From positions 305,146-369,145 of IMG/VR virus record IMGVR_UViG_3300045971_000577: a stretch of DNA of 64,000 nt. One strand, given 5' to 3'. How positions within the stretch are numbered: the first letter of the stretch is position 1; every line of letters starts with the position of its first letter. Under the pieces are notes generated by a model. That model was not told the DNA's origin and did no database searches. It saw only the letters and a program-made list of their open reading frames with translations. Positions 22,881 to 42,515 of this stretch are shown here, in pieces. A program made the translations under genes and the position numbers.

Positions 22881-25517
22881 ATGGCAGCAAGCGGCGCATC
22901 ACAGAGTAGCAAGGGGTTCGGGTCCGGTGGCAAGGTCATCGACAAGTCGGTTGCTGGTGGAATAAGACCACCAGCAACACCGGGTGCGGCGAGACCACCT
23001 GCATCCGCACCCCCGGTAGTACAGGGTAATTCCTTTGCCCATAAACCAGGAAACGTAGTCTCAGATGATAAGTTTCAACTAAATCTTGCATTCCAACCAA
23101 ATATATTAGATAACTTCGATGTGTATACATATCATTGGAAACTATTTATAGTAGATCCAGAAAGTGCTGCCACCGGCAAGATTCTAGAAACAAAGAACCA
23201 AACTATCATTGCGGAATCTGGCGTAACTGATCTTACAATCGATAAGGTCGACATTCGCGGAATAACAACACCCTCTATCGAAACGGGCACTGGTGTAGCA
23301 ACAAACGTAAAGTTTGAAATCACCGAACCATCGGGTGCTGGCCTTATTGATAAGATATTCTATCAAGCAATAGGGCTCGGTATAGGAAACTGGTCGGTTA
23401 TGCCAGTGTATTTGCAGCTTCAGTTTCGTGGTAGAGATCCCACTACATCGGAATCGTTGATCGACGGTGCAGCCGGTAGTATTGCCACACTAAAATGGGT
23501 ATGGCCATTGAAACTAACAACAATTAAGGCCAACGTGACCACGGTAGGCACTAGATATGATTTCGAAGCAATCATATATAACGAACTTGCACAATCCAAT
23601 GCATATTTTACTATGATGAGCAGCGTGGTACTTAGTAATCTAAAAAATGTTACAGATGCGCTAAATGAACTACAAGATAAGCTGAATGCTGATCAAATGC
23701 TAAAACTGATTGACAACTATAGCATACCCGATATATTCAAGATTGTTGTTGATCCTGCCATTGCAGGCGAAGAACTATTTGCATTCAACAGTAACGAAGA
23801 TTCTTCAAGAAGTGGATCAATGACTGCGCTCGATAAAAAGGATGCTACGTTTGGTCCGGGCACCTCTGTAGATAAGATTATCGACACCATTTTGGCCCAT
23901 ACTCCTAAGTTTCAGAAAAGTATGGTGGGATCGGATACACCCGGTGCAGAAGGTAAACCGTCGACATCGGATCCTTCGCAAATGAAAAAGATGTGGAGAA
24001 TCATCACCGAATCTCGTCCATTACAGTTCGATCCACGACGATTAGACGATGCAAGAGAGTTTACGATATTTGTGATAGAATATGATGTTGGAGTCCTTGA
24101 ATCTAACGTATTTCAAGAAGCAAACGGCAAAGACTCAATTGCCGCTGAACGTAAGCGACTTATTTCTTATCTTGATAAGAGTATATTAAAGAAAAAATAT
24201 AATTACATATTCACCGGCCTAAACGATCAGATTATCAATTTTGATCTAACTGTGAATAATGCATTTGCGGTATCGCAATCCAGAATGGGTGGCATATATA
24301 GTAATCTAGCAATGTCGAGTAAAGGTATTATTACACAAGATAATGCAGCAGCCGAAGCAGCCATTACAGAGAGACTGAGCGCGGCAATATCATTCAATAA
24401 TACAGCACAGCCGGGCATTCATAATGTGAAATCTATAAAAGACAGTCAAGCATCCATAACCTCTGCGATAAATGCATCCTCGTTATCGGAAGATACAAAG
24501 AACAGATATATTACTTTATTGGAACAATCAAAACCAGAAAACAGAACAAACTTTCTAAATCAAAGTGCATACGGTGGTATAAATAATGACGGCAAGTTAG
24601 GTGTCGCACGAGCTAAGGCAACAAATCTTGCCAAACCGCAGTCTGAACAAATAACTAATCAACAGTTGAATTTTATATCTGATGTAAATACAAATCTAAA
24701 AGATCCAAAAAACGCCGCCACTGTCGGTGCATATAATGCCTATCTTGAAGGAGTAAAGGGTAAGCTAAGGCCTATCGCCCACATCGAGCAACTGCAAGAT
24801 AAACAAATCGGCCAGAGTATAGAATCGAGCAGTAATTCCGGGATTCAGAAACTATCTAGTATGTTTTCTGTAGCAATGCACAGTAGTCTAGATTCGTCAT
24901 TTCAGTCAATAAAACTTACAATCAAGGGAGATCCATTCTGGCTATTCCCACAACCGTTCTCTGGAGATAATAGGCCGATATATAACACATTGAAAGATCC
25001 AGTTATTGCTATAGATTGGATCAAGAATGCCCATTTTAGGGCAGCAGGCGAGTATGCTAACTATTATGGCACAGATAACTTTTTGATTATACGATTTAGA
25101 ACCCCGCGTATATATACTTCAGAAGAGACATCGGCTGAGACCACTATGTTCAACGAAGTAGCTACATTCAGCGGCGTGTATAAGGTGACCCGAGTTTCCA
25201 GCAGCTTTGCATCAGGTAAATTTACCCAAGAACTAGAATGTATATTAGACCCATTTATCAATATCGTGAACTTCTCAGCTGAGATTGAAGGAAATGCCGA
25301 GAAGAAAGATGTTGCAACATCGGAAGCCGAACCAAGAACTTATTCGGATATTCCGCCCACCGCAGTAAAAACACAGAAGCTTGCTACTCTGCCAACAACT
25401 AACGGTAAGGGTGTAGTAAGCGAAGGTGCGAATGCCAATGATCTAAGTACACGATTGGCAAATGATGCGAAACTTGCTAAGACAGTAACAATGAACGATC
25501 TCCTGGGTAAAAAATGA
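22881..25517 (+). CDS. Baseplate hub protein (gp27-like position)
   Basis: 878 aa between gp53 and gp5; IKGDPFWL and FSGVYKVTRVSSSF..GKFTQ.L hub-like motifs. Confidence 0.6.
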   Translation: MAASGASQSSKGFGSGGKVIDKSVAGGIRPPATPGAARPPASAPPVVQGNSFAHKPGNVVSDDKFQLNLAFQPNILDNFDVYTYHWKLFIVDPESAATGKILETKNQTIIAESGVTDLTIDKVDIRGITTPSIETGTGVATNVKFEITEPSGAGLIDKIFYQAIGLGIGNWSVMPVYLQLQFRGRDPTTSESLIDGAAGSIATLKWVWPLKLTTIKANVTTVGTRYDFEAIIYNELAQSNAYFTMMSSVVLSNLKNVTDALNELQDKLNADQMLKLIDNYSIPDIFKIVVDPAIAGEELFAFNSNEDSSRSGSMTALDKKDATFGPGTSVDKIIDTILAHTPKFQKSMVGSDTPGAEGKPSTSDPSQMKKMWRIITESRPLQFDPRRLDDAREFTIFVIEYDVGVLESNVFQEANGKDSIAAERKRLISYLDKSILKKKYNYIFTGLNDQIINFDLTVNNAFAVSQSRMGGIYSNLAMSSKGIITQDNAAAEAAITERLSAAISFNNTAQPGIHNVKSIKDSQASITSAINASSLSEDTKNRYITLLEQSKPENRTNFLNQSAYGGINNDGKLGVARAKATNLAKPQSEQITNQQLNFISDVNTNLKDPKNAATVGAYNAYLEGVKGKLRPIAHIEQLQDKQIGQSIESSSNSGIQKLSSMFSVAMHSSLDSSFQSIKLTIKGDPFWLFPQPFSGDNRPIYNTLKDPVIAIDWIKNAHFRAAGEYANYYGTDNFLIIRFRTPRIYTSEETSAETTMFNEVATFSGVYKVTRVSSSFASGKFTQELECILDPFINIVNFSAEIEGNAEKKDVATSEAEPRTYSDIPPTAVKTQKLATLPTTNGKGVVSEGANANDLSTRLANDAKLAKTVTMNDLLGKK

Positions 25518-27925
25518 CATATCTAAATACAAATGAACGAACTGTTTCTGCCACTGCTAATGAGCGGTTCCAGGGACTTGGCAGACAACCTGCACTGTTC
25601 GGGCTCTTCATCGGGTTCGTAAAGAACGCCGATGATGTACAAAGAAACGGCCGTCTGCAAGTGTGGATTCCAGATTTTGGATCAGCACCTACTGAACAGC
25701 AAAGCTGGATTACCGTAAATTATTGTTCTCCATTTGCTGGCGCCACAAACGTAGCCACAACAAGTAAGTCCGATATAAAAACATTCGACGGCACACAAAC
25801 CTCCTACGGTATGTGGATGATTCCTCCCGACATAAACAACGAAGTAGCGGTGATGTTCATCGGTGGTGACCCATCAAAAGGTATTTGGATCGGTTGCTTG
25901 TATAATCAGTATATGAATAATATGGTTCCGGGTATGGCAGCCGACACAAAAAGTTGGCAATATCCGGGCAAGCCAGTGCCTGTTGCCGAATATAATAAGA
26001 ATGATAGTAGTATAACTAGGCCAGATGCAGCATATAGTCCCTATCAGAAAACAAAGTTCAAGGGATTAGGTAATCAAGGGCTAATCAGGGATGAGGGCAG
26101 AGGCATTACCACTTCCAGCGCACGTCGTGAATCGCCGAGTAATGTATTTGGTATTATTACTCCGGGCCCGGTGGTCGACATAAATGCTACTCCAGAAAAT
26201 ATCAGACGTAAAGGTGGTTCGTCATTCATAATGGACGATGGCGCCGGTTCTGAATATGTTCAACTAACAACAAAGACTGGAGCACAGATTAGACTAGATG
26301 AAACAAACGGATTTGTGTATCTAATCAACCGTGACGGAACATCGTGGGTGCAAATGGATCAACACGGTAACATCGACATATTCGGTGCCAACAATATCTC
26401 GATGAGATCGCAACGAGATTTCAATATCAGAGCCGATCGAAATATCAACATAGAAGCCGGTCAGAATATATTCATTAAGGCAGCAAAAGACACAATTGAA
26501 GAGACTACATCATTCACCTATGATGTAAATAATGCGCCCGAATCACTGACTATTCCTGTTTACGCATATAAGGGCGAAGGTAAAGGTGCTGGCGGAAATA
26601 TCGTTATGCAGGCGCTAAACAACTGGCATAGCACGACTCAGAGCAATGCATTTCTGACAGTAGTTGACAACAATATGGATATCAAAATCGGTAATGCTCT
26701 TGGGATGACTACCACAAACGGTGGACAAGATTTCAACTCAAAATTGGGTATAAAGATAACCACTGATGCTGCATTTGACTTAGCAGTAACAGGTAACATT
26801 CGTGCAGGATCAAAAGGTTCTGTTTCTATAGTAGGGACAAGCGATGTTATTGTGTGTTCTTCCGCAGGCATTTCTATAAACTCTCAGGGCGATATCAAAG
26901 AAGTTGCTGCCGGAAATCTGCTAATGACATCCGGTAATATTATAACTTCCGCCAGCGCGCTGAGTTTCGGGGGTACAGCAAGTATTGCAGGTATGACTAC
27001 CCTTGCAGGCGGATTAATGGCTGCGGGTCCTGTTTCGTTAGGAGGCGCCGCACCATTTACACCTGCAGGCGATACAAATCCTACAGCGAGTGAGGGCGCA
27101 TTATCAGCATCTACGGCACGTCCTGCTGAAGTAAAACCACTAAACGATAAGATCAATATTCTTGCAACCTGGGAAAACGAAGAAAATAAGTTCAAGAGAA
27201 ATGCACTTTCGGTAAGAACTACAGTCTCGAGATATCCTACATACGAACCGTGTCCCGAACATGAAAAGTTTGTGTTTGGTGATATAGCAGGATTCGCACC
27301 AGAGATAACCGAAAGTGACAAAACATACGAAGGATCAAGTGGAGTAGGAAACTCAGCAACAGTTGCACCTGCAGGCTCCACTACCCCTGGCGCAAATAAC
27401 ACGTCAATCGAGGGTGATCCAGTAACAGATAGCAGTACTGGGAAAGATATAAACATGAATGCACTTCGTAACCAATTGATTATTCACGAAGGAAAGAAGG
27501 ACAAAGTATATCTAGACACCGGCGGATTATTACATAGCGGGATAGGTCATTTATTACGCGCAGGCGAAGCAGCCCAGTTCCCATTAGACTCGCCTATTTC
27601 AGAGACACAAATCGAATCATGGTTTACACAAGATTCGACATCAGCAATAAAGATTTCCCAGGAACTACTCGGGGATACGTGGAGTGAACTGTCCGATATT
27701 AGAAAACGAGCAATGGTTGATCTTTCCTATAATATAGGCAAGGCCAGGCTGTCAAAGTTTACTAAGTTTATTTCAACAATGAAGTCAGCAGATTTTAATG
27801 CTGCGGGCGATGCTCTACGCAGCTCGAAATGGTTTGTACAGGTAGGCCGTCGTGGGCTTAGTGTGGTCTCAATGATTGTCAACAACATCGATCCAACAGG
27901 ATCTGATAAAAAGTTTCCGAGATAA
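25514..27925 (+). CDS. gp5: Baseplate central spike gp5-like with C-terminal T4-type lysozyme
   Basis: OB-fold (GRLQVWIP, GMWMIPPD), beta-helix repeats, HEG...YLDT.G...GIGHLL, SKWFVQVGRR. Confidence 0.88.
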   Translation: MTYLNTNERTVSATANERFQGLGRQPALFGLFIGFVKNADDVQRNGRLQVWIPDFGSAPTEQQSWITVNYCSPFAGATNVATTSKSDIKTFDGTQTSYGMWMIPPDINNEVAVMFIGGDPSKGIWIGCLYNQYMNNMVPGMAADTKSWQYPGKPVPVAEYNKNDSSITRPDAAYSPYQKTKFKGLGNQGLIRDEGRGITTSSARRESPSNVFGIITPGPVVDINATPENIRRKGGSSFIMDDGAGSEYVQLTTKTGAQIRLDETNGFVYLINRDGTSWVQMDQHGNIDIFGANNISMRSQRDFNIRADRNINIEAGQNIFIKAAKDTIEETTSFTYDVNNAPESLTIPVYAYKGEGKGAGGNIVMQALNNWHSTTQSNAFLTVVDNNMDIKIGNALGMTTTNGGQDFNSKLGIKITTDAAFDLAVTGNIRAGSKGSVSIVGTSDVIVCSSAGISINSQGDIKEVAAGNLLMTSGNIITSASALSFGGTASIAGMTTLAGGLMAAGPVSLGGAAPFTPAGDTNPTASEGALSASTARPAEVKPLNDKINILATWENEENKFKRNALSVRTTVSRYPTYEPCPEHEKFVFGDIAGFAPEITESDKTYEGSSGVGNSATVAPAGSTTPGANNTSIEGDPVTDSSTGKDINMNALRNQLIIHEGKKDKVYLDTGGLLHSGIGHLLRAGEAAQFPLDSPISETQIESWFTQDSTSAIKISQELLGDTWSELSDIRKRAMVDLSYNIGKARLSKFTKFISTMKSADFNAAGDALRSSKWFVQVGRRGLSVVSMIVNNIDPTGSDKKFPR

Positions 27926-27928
27926 TAT

Positions 27929-28705
27929 ATGTCATGCGCTCCTCCAACAATCACCGTAGGTGGTGTAACAATATCCACAAGCGATTTTCAGAATGCGAAA
28001 GATCTTATCGATCTTGTCAGTGGTGACGGTGGCGATCCTACTCTTGACGGATATGATGAAAATATTGCTGGCGGAAACAATACATCTGGACGCCGCGGAG
28101 TTCAGCTAGGTAGCATATCTACTCAGACAAGTTTACCATCGAGTATCGCACATTCATCATCTATGACCGATATGACTCCGGCTAAAGGCGGGAATGGTTC
28201 ACCTATCCCCGCCACAATATGGAATCGTAACTATGATTATCTGCTTAGTACCAACTTCACAGTGAAGAGTCTAACCGTAGGCACACTATTTCCAAATCAA
28301 CTATCTAATTATATGTCATACACACAGGATGCAAGATTTTGTAATCTGCAGAATCTATCTGTGAATATTTTAGAACCATTATTGGCAAAGTTTGGAAAGA
28401 TAACAGTTAACTCCGGTATTAGAAATGCAACATCAACCCCATCTGGTGTAAGCCAACATATTACCGGCCAGGCATGTGACATTCAAGTGCAGGGATGGAC
28501 ATATGCAAGATATTGGGATGCAGCAATATGGATAAAGAATAACATTCCGTTTGACCAGTTTATCTTCGAACACAGTGATAAGACCGGACTCGCATGGTTT
28601 CATTTGAGTTATAACAAAGACGGAAACCGACCTGTTTCTGCACCTACAAAAGTAATGACAATGTATAGAAACCAATACGATGCTGGACTAAAACGCTTCG
28701 GATAA
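27929..28705 (+). CDS. Peptidase M15 family zinc peptidoglycan peptidase
   Basis: NSGIR, SQHITGQACDI, WFHLS. Confidence 0.85.
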   Translation: MSCAPPTITVGGVTISTSDFQNAKDLIDLVSGDGGDPTLDGYDENIAGGNNTSGRRGVQLGSISTQTSLPSSIAHSSSMTDMTPAKGGNGSPIPATIWNRNYDYLLSTNFTVKSLTVGTLFPNQLSNYMSYTQDARFCNLQNLSVNILEPLLAKFGKITVNSGIRNATSTPSGVSQHITGQACDIQVQGWTYARYWDAAIWIKNNIPFDQFIFEHSDKTGLAWFHLSYNKDGNRPVSAPTKVMTMYRNQYDAGLKRFG

Positions 28706-32939: not shown

Positions 32940-35900
32940 ATGACTCAATACATAAAGAAACTGCCAGCCGTTTTTCAAACGGTAACAGAAAAGAAATTCT
33001 TCGACGCAACATTTGATCAAGTGTTGTCAAAGAAGGACAGTGATCTATTGAATGGTTATCTAGGACGTCGTAATCCGGGTAACTATAACCCGATTACTGA
33101 CTTCTATCTACCCGAATCTAACAAGAATAGAACCTGGTGGCAGTTGGAAGCAACAGCATTCGCACGTACAGAAGATTCGACTAAATCTAACATTTTCTTC
33201 TACGAAGACCTGTTGAACCGTATTACATCATTAGGTGGTAATACTCTAAACCAGGACAGGCTATTTGAATCAGAATACTACAGCTGGGCCCCTCCTATTG
33301 ATGTTGATATGTTTATGAACTATCAAAATTATTACTGGATTGAACAAGGGCTGCCTGCTATTACGATTACAGGTACAACCTGGGCAGCAATCAAGGCCAA
33401 CGATATGGTTACACCTGTTGGTGCCACACCTGCTGGGGTAACATTGTCATCGGGGATGACTCTAGTTCTTCCAGATGATCCAGCATACCCCGACAGTATG
33501 GTTATTGAAAACTTCGGTGGTTGTCGCGGCTTCGAACTGATTACACAGAATACAGGCACCACTGCGGGAACCATATACGAGTTCTTGCCATGGGACGGTA
33601 TTATCGAGTTGTCTACAGGCAGAGTTATCCAAAACCTAATATGGGACGCAACAACCTGGGATACCCAGCCACAACCAGCAACAGGTGATTATATCACTAT
33701 TCAGCGAGGATCCGCAGATTCCAACAGCTGGTCAACAACAAACAGATGGTTTAATATTCAAACTATTAGTCAGGCAATGGCTATTACCAACACAACCTTC
33801 CCACAGAATGCTACACGTGGCCTAAGACCTATCATTCAATTTATTGCTGATCTCGTATTGTATCCTCTTGGTAATACAAAGGTCTCGGTAAATCAGGCAC
33901 CACTATTTCAATTATACGATCACGAAGGCATTGAACTAGATAATGTAACAACCTATCCTAACAGTACATTCGCTGGCAGCAAGATTTTTTCGTATAAAGA
34001 AAATACAGTTGCTGGCGCGTCAATAGATTCTATTCTAAAATTTCCGCTGACATATGGTGAGTCAGGTCAGACCACTGATATTATATTTCAAAATAATCTT
34101 ATTACTGATAGATATACATACAACGAAATAGATCCAGTCGCTGGATACTATTATTACCGTACAATTTCGACACTTGCCGATCCTCTCCCGTTACTCTTCA
34201 ACAACTGGAATCTTTATAATTTGTGCGATTGCGCAGATATTTCTCCAACACCTCCGGCAAATTGTATCGAAAAAAGTAAGCAAAGAGTTATTGATAAGTT
34301 TGTTGTTGGGTATGGTACACAATATCAGTTTAGGCTTAGTGTCACTCCCTACGGCTACACGGCCGGCGGCGGTACAGTTCAACCGGCGTCGGATATCATT
34401 GTATCAGTAAATGATAAAGAAATCTTTCCATATTCAATAGCCAATACGAACGGATATACCCTAGAAGAAATCAACAACGAGGTGTATGTTGTACTTTCAT
34501 CATATCTAACCAATCTACTTACTATTACACAAAGTCGCGCGCCAGTTGTGGAAGTGCAAACCTATACCCACTCCAATCTAAATCCGGAAGCGTCGGGCTA
34601 CTTTGAAATCCCGCAACAGCTCGAGGCAAATCCTAATCAAGAGGAAGTGGGCGATATAGGTATCGGAAGCCTAATTCAACAATTTTCATCAATCATCTCT
34701 AATCAGATTGGATTTGCTGGAACAGCATTTGGTGGTAATAATAACTACAGCGAACTTAGAAAAAACAGATCAATTGGTTCTTATATTCTGCAGAATACAG
34801 CGCCATTGCTAAAAGCAATGTTGGTGTCCTCTAGCGACGATTTAGATTTCATTATTGCTGAAAGATTTAGCCAGGACGAATACACAAAGTTCAAGAATAA
34901 GTTCTTAAGAGTTGCAAAGCAACTTATTGATCAAGGATTCAATCCTACACAACTCAACAACGGGACTATTCTGACTAGCGAATGGGTTGGCGAAATTATT
35001 CGTATACTCGGTATATCTAAAGAATTCTCAAGTGCGTTTGCGTATTCACACATGATTGCAAACGGTGCCCCTGACACAATTCAGAATGTGTCTGTACCGG
35101 CATTGTTACAAACTACTCTTGCCAATTATGCAGATCTCTTGAATGTGCAAAATGCGTTGTATGTATACAACACAACCGGTACTGAAAAGATTTTGATGAT
35201 TGGTAGGGACTATACCGTAGCTACTACCAGCACCACTATTACTGTAGATTTTATACCTACCGGTGGCAATGTTGCCATAGGCGATTCAGTATATTTCTAC
35301 ATCTATAAGAATCCGCTACCTGCATATATTCCGTCTACTCCGACAAAGCTCGGTATGTATCAGACATACATTCCACGCACAGAACTCGATACTTCATATG
35401 CAATTCCATCAAATGTAATCATTGGCCACGACGGCTCAAAGACTATTGCTTATGGTGACTATCGCGATAACCTATTGCTTGATCTAGAAACAAGAATCTA
35501 CAACCTTTTGAACAGCAAGTTCCACAATCAGTATACTCCGCCAGTTCGCCTGGAATCTGTCAAGCCTGGTTACTTCAGACAGACAAGATATTCTCGCCAA
35601 GAGTTTTTAGATATCACAGAGTCTTATCTCAACAAATGGTCTGCAAAGAACAAGGCAAACTATCGTGCAAATGATTGGGTAAGTGCATCTGCGGTAACTC
35701 CAGTAAATCAGCTATGGAAGTTGTATAACTACAGTGCGGTTGACTTGCCTGGCAACTGGAAGGGCATCTATCAATACTATTACGATACCATCTTCCCTAA
35801 TACACGTCCGTGGGAAATGCTAGGGTTCAGTTCACAACCATCGTGGTGGACCGCAGAGTACGGCACTGACTACACTCCGACAAATGCTCATATGTGGGCA

Positions 35901-38900
35901 GACTTAGAGAACGGTATTATCCGTCAAGGACCCACAGCTATATACAATCCAGTAACTGGACTACCACAAGAACAGCCAATGTGGGCTCGTCCGGGATTGG
36001 CAGCAATCATTCCTGTAGATGCGCTAGGTGATATTGTTCCTGTCCCTGCATTGTTTAGCATTCCTATTGCAAGCGATTATGCACCATTTGATTACTTTGA
36101 TGCAGACTGGAAGTACGGTGACGGATCTCCAGTAGAACAGGCGTGGATGTCAACATCCGGTTATGCATTTACCGTACAAGAATTTTTGTACCTAATGAAG
36201 CCTGCAGAGTTTGGTGAGCTTCTATGGGACACAGTCGGAACAGAACTATCGCCGGGTATGATTTCAGATCCCACTGGACTTCCACCGGGTATAGACTTAC
36301 CTGTAAGATCATCAGTGAACTGGCAATATGTTCAGAATGATCAATACACAAATGATGATCCATTCTTTACATGGATGCGCCCTAAGAACAAAGATCAACT
36401 GGTTCATGCGGAATCAATTGACGGAGTTATTCAGGTTCGTTATGGATATCAGCGTTGGATCAGTGATAGAGTTCTATTTCTTGGTATGGATGTAACATCT
36501 ACATTTGGTCAGAAGATCCGGACATTAGATGTCAACCTAGCTAATAAGTTCGGCGGCTTCACAAATAAGGATACGTCAACAACCTATATTGAGTCAGTAA
36601 CATCAGGAGCAACCAATAGTACATTGCTTGTGCCGAGTAATAACTTCGACGTTATTTTGCATAAAAGTCCACCGGTCGATACCTATGCTTATAGCGGAAT
36701 AGTAGTTCGTAGTCTTGCTGATGGCACTTTTGTGATTTATGGTTACGACTTACAGAACTCTGAATTCATCACACTGGATAGATCGAATGCAAAACTAATA
36801 GATATAACTATTGGCGGAACACCAGACAAATTCTCCCAATTTATTTCGGGAGAAACATATAATAAGGGCGACATTGTAAGATACAACGGGGTATTCTATC
36901 TTGCAGTAATAACTCATGTTGCAACAAAGTTTACAACAACCAACTGGCAAAAGCTTAGGGCACTACCGATAGCCGGCGGTATTTCTGTTACATATAAGCC
37001 CGTGTCGGAATCAACTATTACGAAGTATCCTTATGGATCTATACTAAAGTCGGCACAGGAAGTGTTTGACTTGATGATTGGATGGGGTGCATATCTTGAA
37101 TCACGTGGGTGGGACTTTACAGACGTAAATCAGGACACAAATATTGTTAGCGATTGGTTATATTCAGCGAAACAGTTTTTATTTTGGTTAAATACCGCAT
37201 GGGCACCCGATGCAGCCATTCAGTTGAGTCCACTTGCAAATACCGCAAAGCTGACTGTAAAGACTGGATATCCTAACGATGTAGAAAACATCTATAACGG
37301 TGTATACAGCATACTTGATAAGTTCGGCGTAGCTATTCCTACTGATCAGACAGTTACAGATAGAGACGGACAGACGATCACTGTGTCGCCAGTGGATGTG
37401 TCTGCCGGCGGTATTTTCTTCTTACAAGTATCGACATCCGAGACAGAACATGTTCTTATCTTTGATAACTCGACAAACTTCGGTGATGTTGTTTATTCGC
37501 CACTCCTAAGAACTAGGCAACAAAGATTGCGATTCAATGGATTCAGAAGTAACGGCTGGTATGGTAAGATGGAAGCACCGGGCTACCTTGTAATCGACAA
37601 CCAGCTTGTACCTAACTTCGATACAATCGTCGAAGCTATGAGATATTACTACGATCCTAATATCACAATTGATAACCCAAGTCTCGAAGACCTCGGCCGC
37701 CATTTGATTGGGTACGAAAGCAAGAGCTATCTCGATAACCTTGAACTAGCCAACGACGTTCAATATCTATTCTATCAAGGCGCTATCCGTCAGAAGGGAA
37801 CAAAGCAAGCGTTCGACAAGCTATTCAGATCTACTAAGATTCAGAATGATGATGTTATCGAAGTATATGAAGAATGGGCACTAAAGGTTGGCGATTTCGG
37901 CAACACAGTTGAGCAGGTGTCTACAGAGTTCAAGCTTCAGCCGGAGCAGAATACCGGCGAAGTTATTGTTGCACGCCTAAACTTTGTGGCATCGTCTATC
38001 GGAATGGTAAAACAGATTAACATCCTAAATGCAACACAAATTTACAAGACCGTTCCAATAATTACTATTGCTTCGCCCGACACCTCTATCGTCGGATGGA
38101 GACAAGCAAAAGCATATGCAGTTCTGGATTCAATCGGCCGTATTTCTCGGGTTGATATTTCAGACTCTGGTTACGGCTATCTATCAGCCCCATCTGTTAT
38201 TGTATCAACTCCTATTTCTACAGACGAACTGTATGCTGTATGGCAGGGAGAGATTATCAAGGATACATCTGTCGATAACATTATTAACATTGATATTGAC
38301 CAAACTGATGTGTGGACTGTTCGTCCCACTGATCCCGAATATGCGCTAGAGTTTCCGGTCACACCACAGCTAGATTATCCTGTACCAAACGCAGGTTATG
38401 TAAACTTCGACGATGTTGACTTGTATTCGTTTGATGCTGCATCAATGAAGGCTGCGTGGGGTTCACGTGCGTTTAATCCTGTAGAGGACAACACACTTTG
38501 GATTGCAAATACCTTTACACAAGACTGGGGTGTTTACAACCTCGTCAAGTATGCAAATGATTTTGCAGTAGTGGATGCCGGCGGCGGCAACCTACAACTT
38601 CTAACAAAGAAAACAGATCCACTAATCACACCGCAATTCTCTACCACAGGCGAAACAACTGATTTTGGTAACATGTTGGTAATGCAAGTTATTGAAGCTA
38701 CAGCTACAGCAGTTATTGATTCTCCAGGTAGTCAAGCTGCGGGAACAGTAGATATCATCGGCCCTACTCTTGCTGAACTATCGGCAAACGTAGCCGGCGG
38801 CGGAGTAATATCACTCACTATTGTCGAGCCTGGTTCCGGATATCTATCGTTGCCTGCTATCACTACTATCACTATTGATCCTCCTGTAAAGGAAGATGCA

Positions 38901-41900
38901 TCAATGTCCTGCGTGGTTGTGAATGGTGTTGTTACAACCGTGAATATCGATAACGGCGGCATGGGTTATGATCAAACTGGAACAACAGTTGTTGTAACTC
39001 CGCCAGTTCTCACAAACGCATTCGCAACAGCGACGGTTATTGGTAACGAAGTTACCGAGCTAACACTAACCAATCCAGGAAGTGGATATGCTGTTGCACC
39101 AACTGTTGTAATCGATTCTCCACGCAGACAAGCGGTAGCGAGTGCTGAGATTTCCGGCGGATTAGTTACGGGAGTATCAGTTATAAATAACGGCTCCGGA
39201 TACCTTGCGAGTGTAACTACTAGCATATCAATCGATCCCCCGATACCTAACACGGCCACGGCAACCGTGATAATCGGCGGTGTTAGCGGGACAGGTATTG
39301 AATCAATAACTATGACAAATCAGGGCGCCGGATATATATCGACGCCAGGATTTACTATTATATCTGCCGGCGGCCCCGGAGTTGCTGCCAATATATCCCC
39401 GATAATAGCATCCGGTAAGGTTACCGGATTCTCAGTAACTAGTCAAGGATCGGGATATATTTTACCGGTAACTATTATAATTGATGCACCCCCAGCGGGA
39501 GTTACCGCGACAGGTACCGCCACTATTATCGAAGGTAAGGTATCGGAAATTATTATTACAAACCCTGGTACATCATATATTTCGGAACCACAGATAACTA
39601 TTGACCCACCAACCGGGATTACCCCAATTGCAACCGCAACAATAGCAAATGGGACGGTGGCAACAGTGTCATACGCCTCGGCTGGATTATCCGGATATGC
39701 ATTTATTCCTACAGTAACTATTGACCAACCTACTGGTGTAGTTGCTACTTTTGTGCCTACGGTAGTCGATGGTATCATTACTGGCCACGGAGCAATATCT
39801 GGCGGAACAGGATACACATCTATCCCCGCTATAACAGTAAGTAAACCAAATGGAGTTCAGGCACAGGGTGTCGCAACGATAGTGAGCGAATCTATCTTTT
39901 CTGTATCAACTGTTGGCACAGAAGGATCGGGGTATGTTAGTGCGCCAAACGTAACTGTTTCCAGCCCGACAGGTGCAGGTAGACTAACCAACCCTGTTGT
40001 TACAGACGGCGGATTTGGATATAGTATTCCACCGATTATTGCAATCAGTGGAGATGGCGCCGGCGCCACTGCTCACACAGTTCTTACAGGCGATAAGGTA
40101 ACAAGTATTGTTATTGACACGGTCGGTCTCGGCTATACCAGTGCTACCCTTGTTATAGCTCCGCCCGATGGAATTATCGGAGACATTATTCTCGACAAGG
40201 TAGGTTCGAACTATACTGTTGTTCCAGAGGTTGAAATTATTGCAGATCTGCTCGATTTCACCGGCGCAGGCGCCGAAGCCATTGCTACGATAGCAGGCGG
40301 AGTTGTCACAGGTATTACGATCACAAATCGTGGAAGTGGATATACTTTTACTCCTACCGTAAAAATTAAACCTCCTACAACAATTGGCGGTAGTACAAAC
40401 TTTGCGCTTGGATTCTCATACAACAGTGCAGATTCCGACAGCGATCTAACATACTACCACTACGATTTGTTGAATATCGACGATACGAATATTACCTCAG
40501 ACGAAATAGCCGATTATGTAAACTTCACTAATCTTATGTTATTCAAGACAATGCGCTTTGCTGAAATATCCGATGCCAATCTAATCGGTACATATGTTTC
40601 TCTAGATGATAAGGTGTGGATTGACGGTATCGCCGCACAACAATGGTCAGTCAAGAAATATGTTTCGCCAGGTGTGTGGACAGATTATAGAGTCCAGGAA
40701 GATCTAATCAATAGTTCTCTATTCCAGAGTGCATCTGTATTCTCGACAAATACACAGAACGAACTTGTTCGCTTGCCTGTTTACGATCCATTCAAGAATA
40801 TCCTTCCGGGTATGGCAAGACAAAACATTTCGTACATGTCGCTTCAGGATCCAGCAAGATACAATATCACAAGTAATGATAGACTGCGTGCTGATACAAT
40901 CACTTTCGGACCTGCACAAGTAGGTAAGTTGTGGTGGGATCTATCTCAAACCAAGTACGTGTATTACGAGCAACCTATAGCACTCGATGCAAGACCTCTT
41001 GCAGAAAGAGAGATTGAAAACCTAGTTTACAGACGCGACCAATGGGGACAAATTTTCCCAGGAAGCACCGTTGCCATTTACGAATGGGTGCAGAGTGATG
41101 TAGTTCCTACGGAGTACACCGGTACAGGTACACCACGTGATGTTACAAGCTATGTTCAGTTAGTGACATCTAACAGATTTACAGATATTGTCGAAACTAA
41201 GTATTACTTCTGGGTACTCAATACTACTGATAAACCTAACACAGAAAACAGAACTCTTGCTGCACTCGAAACATCGAGACTGCTACAAAGCCCTAAGAGT
41301 CAGGGTTATGCATTCTTTGCACCTATCCAGCAGACTGCTACAAACAATTCTTACATGTTCTTTAACGTGCAGGAAATTTTGGCATATCAAGGAAACAACA
41401 TTCAGATTCAGTATAGAGTTACTGAGAGAAATGATCAACAGCATACCCAGTGGGCATTCTTCAGAGAAGGTGATACCTCGTCGTTCGTTACTGATCAGTT
41501 CTGGAACAAAATGGTTGATAGCTTGTGTGCATACACAAGACCACTTCCTTTGTCAGACGAATATAGCAACAGTATTGATATGGGTGACGGTACAGAAATC
41601 CTACCAGTTCCAGATCCAACACTAAGCTCTGGCGAGAAGTACGGAGTTCAATATCGTCCACGCCAGAGTATGTTTACCAACTTGGCCAATGCAAGAAAAA
41701 TATTCACGCAATCAGCAAACTCTCTGTTGCAATATATTCCTATTAGGGATACCGATCCATCGTGGAATGCTGATATTGCAACCAGCATCTACTGGATATA
41801 TACAAACTGGGTGGAAGTCGGGTACGAGACCACTACACCCGATTATGCATATCAGACATTAGCAGAAGCCAGTGCTGCTATAACAAATATCGCAGTTGGA

Positions 41901-42515
41901 AAAATTGTTAAGGTATTACAAGGAACTGCGGACGGCAGGTACGTTTACTATGTTGTAGAACAATTAAATCCAAATGTTGCTGTAAAGAGTTATAAGGCAG
42001 TTACTATAGAAAACAGTGCAATCAAACTCCTTGACACTATCTACAGTGTTCAGAATGTATATGGGTTATCTACCGAACTAAGGGCATTGCTAAACGCATT
42101 CAGATCTCAAGTAATGATTGACAGTTATATTGTTGATCAGAATGAATTGTTCTTTTCTATGCTGAATTATGTTGTAAGCGAACAAAGAAATCCAGACTGG
42201 GTGTTCAAGTCATCATATATCTTTGTTAAGGAAAATAACAAACCATTATCGCAGAGTAAGATTACGGTGCCGAGCCAAATCAGTAACGTCATTGCGTATA
42301 TTACTGACTCGAAGCCATATCACACTCAAGTTAGAGATTATACCAGCACATATAACACGGCTGATACCGCAACTGGTACTGTTACAGAAGGAATAGTCAT
42401 AGAATCGATAGATTACGAGCCATGGGATGAAAATCTAACATTAGCGTGGGAATCCACTGCATGGGATAATACTACTGCACCGGTAGTATTATTAAATCTA
42501 CCGCTACCCACTTAG
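32940..42515 (+). CDS. Giant baseplate wedge / structural protein (gp7-like position)
   Basis: 3191 aa after gp6; FYQGAIRQKGT, KPYHT motifs; internal GSGY repeats. Confidence 0.75.
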   Translation: MTQYIKKLPAVFQTVTEKKFFDATFDQVLSKKDSDLLNGYLGRRNPGNYNPITDFYLPESNKNRTWWQLEATAFARTEDSTKSNIFFYEDLLNRITSLGGNTLNQDRLFESEYYSWAPPIDVDMFMNYQNYYWIEQGLPAITITGTTWAAIKANDMVTPVGATPAGVTLSSGMTLVLPDDPAYPDSMVIENFGGCRGFELITQNTGTTAGTIYEFLPWDGIIELSTGRVIQNLIWDATTWDTQPQPATGDYITIQRGSADSNSWSTTNRWFNIQTISQAMAITNTTFPQNATRGLRPIIQFIADLVLYPLGNTKVSVNQAPLFQLYDHEGIELDNVTTYPNSTFAGSKIFSYKENTVAGASIDSILKFPLTYGESGQTTDIIFQNNLITDRYTYNEIDPVAGYYYYRTISTLADPLPLLFNNWNLYNLCDCADISPTPPANCIEKSKQRVIDKFVVGYGTQYQFRLSVTPYGYTAGGGTVQPASDIIVSVNDKEIFPYSIANTNGYTLEEINNEVYVVLSSYLTNLLTITQSRAPVVEVQTYTHSNLNPEASGYFEIPQQLEANPNQEEVGDIGIGSLIQQFSSIISNQIGFAGTAFGGNNNYSELRKNRSIGSYILQNTAPLLKAMLVSSSDDLDFIIAERFSQDEYTKFKNKFLRVAKQLIDQGFNPTQLNNGTILTSEWVGEIIRILGISKEFSSAFAYSHMIANGAPDTIQNVSVPALLQTTLANYADLLNVQNALYVYNTTGTEKILMIGRDYTVATTSTTITVDFIPTGGNVAIGDSVYFYIYKNPLPAYIPSTPTKLGMYQTYIPRTELDTSYAIPSNVIIGHDGSKTIAYGDYRDNLLLDLETRIYNLLNSKFHNQYTPPVRLESVKPGYFRQTRYSRQEFLDITESYLNKWSAKNKANYRANDWVSASAVTPVNQLWKLYNYSAVDLPGNWKGIYQYYYDTIFPNTRPWEMLGFSSQPSWWTAEYGTDYTPTNAHMWADLENGIIRQGPTAIYNPVTGLPQEQPMWARPGLAAIIPVDALGDIVPVPALFSIPIASDYAPFDYFDADWKYGDGSPVEQAWMSTSGYAFTVQEFLYLMKPAEFGELLWDTVGTELSPGMISDPTGLPPGIDLPVRSSVNWQYVQNDQYTNDDPFFTWMRPKNKDQLVHAESIDGVIQVRYGYQRWISDRVLFLGMDVTSTFGQKIRTLDVNLANKFGGFTNKDTSTTYIESVTSGATNSTLLVPSNNFDVILHKSPPVDTYAYSGIVVRSLADGTFVIYGYDLQNSEFITLDRSNAKLIDITIGGTPDKFSQFISGETYNKGDIVRYNGVFYLAVITHVATKFTTTNWQKLRALPIAGGISVTYKPVSESTITKYPYGSILKSAQEVFDLMIGWGAYLESRGWDFTDVNQDTNIVSDWLYSAKQFLFWLNTAWAPDAAIQLSPLANTAKLTVKTGYPNDVENIYNGVYSILDKFGVAIPTDQTVTDRDGQTITVSPVDVSAGGIFFLQVSTSETEHVLIFDNSTNFGDVVYSPLLRTRQQRLRFNGFRSNGWYGKMEAPGYLVIDNQLVPNFDTIVEAMRYYYDPNITIDNPSLEDLGRHLIGYESKSYLDNLELANDVQYLFYQGAIRQKGTKQAFDKLFRSTKIQNDDVIEVYEEWALKVGDFGNTVEQVSTEFKLQPEQNTGEVIVARLNFVASSIGMVKQINILNATQIYKTVPIITIASPDTSIVGWRQAKAYAVLDSIGRISRVDISDSGYGYLSAPSVIVSTPISTDELYAVWQGEIIKDTSVDNIINIDIDQTDVWTVRPTDPEYALEFPVTPQLDYPVPNAGYVNFDDVDLYSFDAASMKAAWGSRAFNPVEDNTLWIANTFTQDWGVYNLVKYANDFAVVDAGGGNLQLLTKKTDPLITPQFSTTGETTDFGNMLVMQVIEATATAVIDSPGSQAAGTVDIIGPTLAELSANVAGGGVISLTIVEPGSGYLSLPAITTITIDPPVKEDASMSCVVVNGVVTTVNIDNGGMGYDQTGTTVVVTPPVLTNAFATATVIGNEVTELTLTNPGSGYAVAPTVVIDSPRRQAVASAEISGGLVTGVSVINNGSGYLASVTTSISIDPPIPNTATATVIIGGVSGTGIESITMTNQGAGYISTPGFTIISAGGPGVAANISPIIASGKVTGFSVTSQGSGYILPVTIIIDAPPAGVTATGTATIIEGKVSEIIITNPGTSYISEPQITIDPPTGITPIATATIANGTVATVSYASAGLSGYAFIPTVTIDQPTGVVATFVPTVVDGIITGHGAISGGTGYTSIPAITVSKPNGVQAQGVATIVSESIFSVSTVGTEGSGYVSAPNVTVSSPTGAGRLTNPVVTDGGFGYSIPPIIAISGDGAGATAHTVLTGDKVTSIVIDTVGLGYTSATLVIAPPDGIIGDIILDKVGSNYTVVPEVEIIADLLDFTGAGAEAIATIAGGVVTGITITNRGSGYTFTPTVKIKPPTTIGGSTNFALGFSYNSADSDSDLTYYHYDLLNIDDTNITSDEIADYVNFTNLMLFKTMRFAEISDANLIGTYVSLDDKVWIDGIAAQQWSVKKYVSPGVWTDYRVQEDLINSSLFQSASVFSTNTQNELVRLPVYDPFKNILPGMARQNISYMSLQDPARYNITSNDRLRADTITFGPAQVGKLWWDLSQTKYVYYEQPIALDARPLAEREIENLVYRRDQWGQIFPGSTVAIYEWVQSDVVPTEYTGTGTPRDVTSYVQLVTSNRFTDIVETKYYFWVLNTTDKPNTENRTLAALETSRLLQSPKSQGYAFFAPIQQTATNNSYMFFNVQEILAYQGNNIQIQYRVTERNDQQHTQWAFFREGDTSSFVTDQFWNKMVDSLCAYTRPLPLSDEYSNSIDMGDGTEILPVPDPTLSSGEKYGVQYRPRQSMFTNLANARKIFTQSANSLLQYIPIRDTDPSWNADIATSIYWIYTNWVEVGYETTTPDYAYQTLAEASAAITNIAVGKIVKVLQGTADGRYVYYVVEQLNPNVAVKSYKAVTIENSAIKLLDTIYSVQNVYGLSTELRALLNAFRSQVMIDSYIVDQNELFFSMLNYVVSEQRNPDWVFKSSYIFVKENNKPLSQSKITVPSQISNVIAYITDSKPYHTQVRDYTSTYNTADTATGTVTEGIVIESIDYEPWDENLTLAWESTAWDNTTAPVVLLNLPLPT
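38690..40380 (+). repeat. About 14 copies of a ~40-aa beta-rich repeat in the giant protein
   Basis: ATATxxxGxVTxITITNxGSGYxxxPTVTIxPP-like units. Confidence 0.8.

Follow-up and report, generated by a model that had tools for sequence, protein, structure and literature searches.

A phage spike ending in a T4-type lysozyme domain

The final 64,000 nucleotides of IMG/VR virus record IMGVR_UViG_3300045971_000577 (positions 305,146 to 369,145 of that record; hereafter the window) carry, on the plus strand at 25514..27925, a gene for an 803-residue protein, P0001, that is a central spike of the cell-puncturing gp5/VgrG type with a C-terminal lysozyme domain placed after the helix region. The record is complete, with 369,145 bp and direct terminal repeats, and the genome is that of an uncultured jumbo myophage recovered from a pond metagenome. 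The protein contains matches to the Pfam families Phage_base_V and Phage_lysozyme, and among PHROGs it hits phrog_13211, "baseplate hub subunit and tail lysozyme" (3.3e-63). At the position of its lysozyme domain that corresponds to Thr26 of T4 lysozyme, the spike has a histidine, His674 (CAT, 27533..27535, plus strand). This residue, its inheritance, and its possible catalytic role are the subject of this report.

The domains follow one another along the plus strand. The N-terminal oligonucleotide/oligosaccharide-binding (OB) fold (residues ~31 to 130; 25604..25903) is indicated by PF04717 (Phage_base_V) at residues 96 to 130 (40.7 bits; cut-off, 23.8) and by beta strands at residues 31 to 128 of the full-length model. 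The putative beta-helix, or needle, region spans residues ~211 to 520 (26144..27073, boundaries approximate); DUF2345 matches it at residues 283 to 344, weakly and below the Pfam cut-off (22.8 versus 30.7 bits), and the monomer model shows repeated short strands at 211 to 352 and then an extended chain. A linker follows (residues ~521 to 645; 27074..27448) that contains a small beta element. Ala, Gly, Ser, Thr, and Pro abound in its ~125 residues, the model places strands at 544 to 569 with low to medium predicted local distance difference test (pLDDT) values, and a block at ~538 to 583 is conserved across the spike family. The lysozyme domain itself occupies residues 646 to 803 (27449..27922). 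The full-length monomer model (pLDDT 77) runs in the same order, from the OB fold through strands and extended chain, the beta element, and the linker to the lysozyme at 648 to 800. This model and the Pfam layout agree with a first-pass annotation of the locus, which had described the lysozyme as C-terminal and not central as in T4 gp5. Some members of the family, such as P0029 (1060 residues) and P0067 (1000 residues), have an extra carbohydrate-binding PF02839 (CBM_5_12) domain between spike and lysozyme in precomputed Pfam hits.

By sequence and by predicted fold, the C-terminal domain is a member of glycoside hydrolase family 24 (GH24), of the two-lobed T4 type. PF00959 matches P0001 at residues 658 to 778 with 33.1 bits (cut-off, 22.3), and in a search of the complete phage genome this spike had the only PF00959 domain (37 bits in that search). 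When the last 163 residues (P0002) served as the phmmer query against all PDB sequences (177,635 distinct sequences), they aligned to residues 6 to 151 of T4 lysozyme. The top match was 1QT8, the engineered T26H mutant (E value, 1.8e-10), which ranks first as the only sequence to match at the histidine too. AlphaFold2 models the domain with very high confidence (pLDDT 96.7), and the top 50 Foldseek matches of this model in the PDB are all T4 lysozymes or T4 lysozyme fusions, with a template modeling (TM) score of 0.78 for the best and 0.76 to 0.79 for most. Among the cultured phages in the collection, the lysozyme domain has no close relative, the best showing 34% identity.

The equivalence of His674 and Thr26 is drawn from the alignment and from secondary structure. 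Residues 655 to 681, aligned by eye, match T4 lysozyme 7 to 33 without a gap and with 15 identities in 27 positions, and the gapless stretch at the histidine is bounded on both sides by residues that are invariant in the family. The first-pass annotation had reported this gapless alignment from the translation of 27476-27556 (plus strand), in which E11 and D20 are unchanged and T26 is His; the quoted translation and the CAT codon are correct, and the phmmer and by-eye alignments bear the comparison out. The same annotation had considered that a structure might put the histidine away from the T26 site. In the model, the predicted hairpin strands of P0002 (residues 22 to 27 and 33 to 36) correspond to T4 lysozyme 14 to 19 and 25 to 28, which would place His674 in the strand that bears T26.

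The other residues of the active site can be assigned in the same way, all on the plus strand. Glu659 (GAA, 27488..27490) corresponds to Glu11, the general acid or acid/base where the first helix ends, and is invariant in 70 of 70 family members. Asp668 (GAC, 27515..27517) corresponds to Asp20 and is Asp in 68 of the 70, including all 14 that have His at position 26. Arg780 (27851..27853) corresponds to Arg145, the partner of Glu11, and is invariant in the family, while Tyr666 and His679 are the equivalents of Tyr18 and His31. Set beside the canonical "true muramidase" pattern Glu-8aa-Asp/Cys-5aa-Thr, the domain fits at Asp668 and departs from it at His674, where Thr is expected. It carries the T26H-type signature, namely, His at position 26 with Glu11 kept.

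Distribution and history of the histidine

The first-pass annotation had proposed, as a check on its reading, that the frequency of His at position 26 be determined among GH24 homologs. A search limited to spike-length proteins gave 70 full-length homologs, query included, from contigs of up to 369 kb. Position 26 is Thr in 51 of them, His in 14, Ser in 3, and Tyr and Leu in one each. An independent scan of IMG/VR returned 231 relatives; the 73 fetched loci that cover the lysozyme domain have Thr in 64 cases, His in 7, and Ser and Cys once each, or, counted as distinct motif strings, 46 with Thr, 5 with His, 1 with Ser, and 1 with Cys. The seven His loci use CAT five times and CAC twice. The spike family as a whole thus has two common states, Thr at ~75 to 90% and His at ~10 to 20%, and the histidine is inherited and recurrent in the family, not unique to the gene in the window. 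Sequencing error was ruled out as its source, since many diverged homologs carry His, through both CAT and CAC. A domain-only search for stand-alone relatives yielded 6 proteins.

One further locus, L007 (IMGVR_UViG_3300045747_000242, 10.7 kb), encodes a spike that is 100% identical to P0001 across all 803 residues and puts the His allele in a second assembly. The sample may be the same or a related one. Two pond-metagenome runs also contain the identical gene, on contigs that match the window exactly; since they may be where the window's DNA came from, we do not count them as independent support.

Across GH24, His at this position is rare, accounting for ~2 to 3% of the lineages sampled near the query. 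A diverse sample was formed by clustering 4,622 hits at 50% identity and taking the best 150 representatives; the 145 residues in its T26 column are 134 Thr, 5 His, 2 Ala, 2 Ser, 1 Cys, and 1 Lys. Two of the five His belong to fragments of the same spike family, and the rest come from two other lineages. These two lineages, which are not related to the spike family, are represented by P0124, P0145, and P0248, from marine metagenomes, and by P0192; the marine GH24 family has His in 3 of 51 members and Thr in the other 48. In a published motif alignment of 190 GH24v sequences (PMC2976769, Fig. S5), the T26 column has no His; it is Thr apart from a few Ser and some Val. Our full-text literature search found no natural retaining GH24 enzyme and met T26H only as an engineered mutant; within the literature searched, a natural His at this position has apparently not been remarked on before.

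Two trees bear on the history of the change. In the tree of full-length proteins, the His state takes 7 changes, at least 4 of which are forced by well-supported branches, and P0022 (Thr) and P0025 (His) are well-supported sisters. In the tree of the lysozyme domain, from which the T26 column was removed, all His proteins fall into one weakly supported group of 23 (14 His, 7 Thr, 1 Tyr, and 1 Ser). The discrepancy could reflect the exchange of domains between phages or poor resolution from 160 columns. Because the domain tree allows a single origin, the full-length tree taken by itself overstates how secure recurrence is. We conclude that Thr and His have replaced each other on several occasions in related spikes, whichever way the changes ran, and we do not claim multiple gains of His.

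Two further lines were set aside. The codons at this position in four close relatives are ACT, TCT, TAC, and CAT and fit a single-step path from Thr through Ser and Tyr to His; this path was dropped as evidence because synonymous divergence (dS) is saturated in every pair. Likewise, we do not claim co-variation of position 26 with positions 21, 22, 25, and others, as the supported branches provide 4 independent Thr/His pairs, too few for significance.

A possible histidine nucleophile and its alternatives

Judged from their sequences, the His forms look like working enzymes. Glu11, Tyr18, Asp20, and Arg145 are kept in 14 of 14 His proteins and in 7 of 7 His loci from IMG/VR, and the 14 proteins also keep Gly12, Gly28, Gly30, and His31. 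That the rest of the active site is kept in every His form argues for an active enzyme with the histidine in its catalytic cleft. Furthermore, the spectrum of non-Thr residues at position 26 differs from what relaxed constraint predicts. His is by far the commonest of them, although the step from Thr to His takes two base changes. Among the one-step neighbors of Thr, the family lacks Ala, Pro, Ile, Asn, Lys, and Arg and has only Ser, which keeps the hydroxyl. In five genes, the lysozyme domain has a ratio of nonsynonymous to synonymous divergence (dN/dS) of ~0.05 to 0.2, indicative of purifying selection, and with dS saturated these values are, if anything, overestimates.

The replacement of Thr26 by His in T4 lysozyme reportedly goes back to Kuroki, Weaver, and Matthews (1995 and 1999). 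In the wild-type enzyme, the attacking water comes in from the alpha face, and Thr26 helps to hold it in place (Hiromoto et al. 2017; PMC5606550). In T26H, this one residue is sufficient to change the product anomer from alpha to beta and the enzyme from inverting to retaining. The mutant works by double displacement, in which Glu11 serves as acid/base with its pKa tuned by Arg145, Asp20 is less important, and the His nucleophile lies 2.7 Å from C1 in a superposition (PMC5606550). The authors call this active mutant an "artificial retaining enzyme" and describe transglycosylation as more effective than hydrolysis (PMC5606550). The first-pass annotation, which had invoked the conversion of T4 lysozyme from an inverting to a retaining enzyme with transglycosylase activity, thus cited the biochemistry correctly.

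Since every element of the T26H framework is present in the spike, the best-supported reading is that His674 would act as the histidine does in T26H. By this analogy, we put it at a little short of an even chance that the His forms are active muramidases working in that way. The C-terminal GH24 domain would cut host peptidoglycan locally during infection. The neutral imidazole of His674 would attack C1 of N-acetylmuramic acid (MurNAc) from the alpha face, with Glu659 acting first as acid and then as base. The resulting glycosyl-enzyme would be resolved by water, with net retention, or by a sugar hydroxyl, giving transglycosylation. With slightly more reserve, we suggest that the His forms may be natural His-nucleophile glycosidases, retaining and capable of transglycosylation, within a family otherwise classed as inverting. 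We know of no natural glycoside hydrolase for which a histidine nucleophile has been established.

Several observations weigh against this proposal. The domain is ~23% identical to T4 lysozyme and ~23 to 34% identical to T4 lysozyme and other characterized GH24 enzymes, and at such low identity the effect of the histidine could depend on context. Hairpin positions 21, 22, and 25 differ strongly in raw frequency between His and Thr forms, but the 4 independent pairs are too few to establish co-variation. The domain tree may be compatible with a single origin of His followed by ~4 reversions, or with domain exchange. Moreover, the four-member clade that contains the query reads His (query), Tyr (P0004), Thr (P0003), and Ser (P0012) at position 26. 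P0004 (L001, 2006-4417), the nearest relative of the query spike with 84% identity overall, combines its Tyr (TAC) with Y18L, D20N, and T21A and sits on a long branch. Its active site looks like one that is decaying or has been repurposed. At least one close relative thus tolerates decay of the site, a sign that constraint may be relaxed in this neighborhood.

If the histidine were instead a tolerated replacement, the enzyme would still be inverting, with His674 and Asp668 together taking over the role of Thr26 in holding or activating the attacking water. The retention of Asp20 in 14 of 14 His proteins would fit such water activation, given that T26H needs Asp20 less (PMC5606550), and the interchange of Thr and His among fairly close relatives, as in P0022 and P0025, has the appearance of a swap between residues of near-equivalent function. 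In T4 lysozyme, however, T26H alone switches the product anomer (PMC5606550). A water-holding role would also allow one-step swaps such as Asn, yet only Ser is seen. On balance, we consider this explanation unlikely, albeit one to be taken seriously.

The losses in P0004 also bear on a different idea, namely, that the domains with His (and those with Tyr, Leu, or Cys) mainly bind peptidoglycan or cut it weakly, while the wall is opened mostly by an M15-like neighbor. P0004 indicates that catalytic loss is tolerated in the lineage. Between it and the query, dN is about threefold higher in the lysozyme domain than in the N-terminal part (0.212 versus 0.065), and a putative peptidase gene does follow the spike gene, both here and in loci L001 to L003. 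Co-opted GH24 domains in which position 26 is free are known as well, for example, in SpmX (bioRxiv 10.1101/418723). Against this, all 14 His proteins keep the active-site residues listed above, and the engineered T26H is an active enzyme. In the domain tree, the terminal branch of the query is short (0.079), and the long one is that of P0004 (0.28). Mean pairwise identity is no lower among His forms (0.67) than among Thr forms (0.60). An attenuated or inactive domain thus seems to us improbable.

If the MurNAc's own C6 hydroxyl resolved the glycosyl-histidine, 1,6-anhydroMurNAc ends would be left, such as many virion-associated wall enzymes make, and by analogy with T26H, which prefers sugar acceptors over water, this intramolecular acceptor would be the nearest; we nonetheless think a lytic-transglycosylase-like reaction very unlikely, as the known lytic transglycosylases, lambda lysozyme (GH24) included, to our knowledge operate without an enzyme nucleophile.

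T26H has become a textbook example of a re-engineered mechanism, and the spike family offers natural counterparts to it, together with natural Thr controls. If evolution has made the same change, stably or repeatedly, and His674 acts as in T26H, these proteins would be natural enzymes in which to test the His-nucleophile route outside T4 lysozyme, with P0022/P0025 and query/P0003 as matched Thr/His pairs. Should His674 prove to be the nucleophile, the spike would be a natural histidine-nucleophile glycosidase, and the family might supply peptidoglycan transglycosidases with which to prepare defined muropeptides. Alternation between Thr and His would then amount to switching between two catalytic mechanisms on one scaffold, and we speculate that it may be driven by differences in host cell walls. 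It would also be a warning against annotating GH24 proteins as inverting muramidases by family membership alone.

Genome setting and comparison with known systems

The spike gene lies in a baseplate module, with a virion structural protein gene upstream and genes for two wedge proteins, gp25-like and gp6-like (the latter of 1252 residues), downstream. The 878-residue virion-protein open reading frame (ORF) upstream ends in a TGA that overlaps the spike's ATG, as ATGA at window positions 25514-25517, and the recurrence of this overlap in L001 to L003 suggests translational coupling. An adjacent ORF of 258 residues (27929..28705, plus strand) begins 4 nucleotides past the spike stop and is M15-like. 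Among PHROGs it hits phrog_894, "endolysin" (1.2e-19); its match to Peptidase_M15_3 is weak, with 21.1 bits and thus under the cut-off of 23.2, and it had no match among PDB sequences. An H-x6-D motif and a later His can be recognized in it by eye. Genes of this type (258 to 263 residues) also stand 3' of the spike in L001 to L003. Its sequence suggests that the product is probably a second, peptidase-type cell-wall enzyme, which may belong to the baseplate; it forms part of the context and lies outside the His site. Immediately after the gp6-like baseplate gene, a single ORF of 3191 residues (32940-42515, plus strand) presumably encodes a giant baseplate or fiber protein. A search of the window (1-64000), the 64-kb genome end, turned up neither tRNA nor tmRNA genes.

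Among cultured phages, the N-terminal 55% of the spike comes closest to gp350 of the Pseudomonas jumbo phage PA5oct and to the spikes of related Rak2-like jumbo phages. The PA5oct spike, a virion protein by mass spectrometry according to its record annotation, is 44% identical to P0001 over residues 4 to 446 only. The gene order of PA5oct, with virion protein, spike, gp25-like, and gp6-like genes, is as in the window. However, the PA5oct spike has 477 residues and, despite its product name, is without a C-terminal lysozyme, whereas the query has 803 residues and carries one. PA5oct also differs in having no M15-like gene after the spike.

In the placement of its enzyme, the query is reminiscent of the "evolved" VgrG spikes of type VI secretion systems, such as VgrG-3 of Vibrio cholerae, in which an OB fold and a beta-helix are followed by a C-terminal wall-degrading domain. 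Those proteins are secretion-system effectors, not phage proteins. T4 gp5 has in common with the query the OB fold, the GH24 lysozyme, and a baseplate module with gp25-like and gp6-like genes, and its beta-helix has a putative counterpart in the query. The order of domains is not shared: the gp5 lysozyme sits between the OB fold and the beta-helix, whereas that of the query is C-terminal, past the helix region and the linker. With its enzyme at the C terminus, the spike adds another domain arrangement to those of jumbo-phage tail lysozymes, making two. T4 gp5 also has the Glu/Asp/Thr set, where the query has His in place of Thr; gp5-type motifs with Thr are shown in PMC2976769 (Fig. S5).

Two other GH24 proteins depart from Thr at position 26. 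In the muramidase domain of SpmX from Caulobacterales, this position is not Thr (bioRxiv 10.1101/418723). There, D20 and Y18 are lost and position 26 is scattered among Val, Ile, and Met, relaxed after co-option, whereas the spike family keeps D20 and Y18 and its alternative to Thr is specifically His. The engineered T26H mutant of T4 lysozyme (PDB 1QT8 and 5XPE/5XPF) has in common with the query Glu11, Asp20, and Arg145, the G-x-G-H hairpin, and the histidine at the Thr26 position. The mutant is a retaining enzyme, to which the query is likened by sequence and predicted fold, across a domain ~23% identical to T4 lysozyme. T26H was made in the laboratory by a point mutation in an endolysin, whereas the histidine described here is natural, inherited within a clade, and carried on a virion spike.

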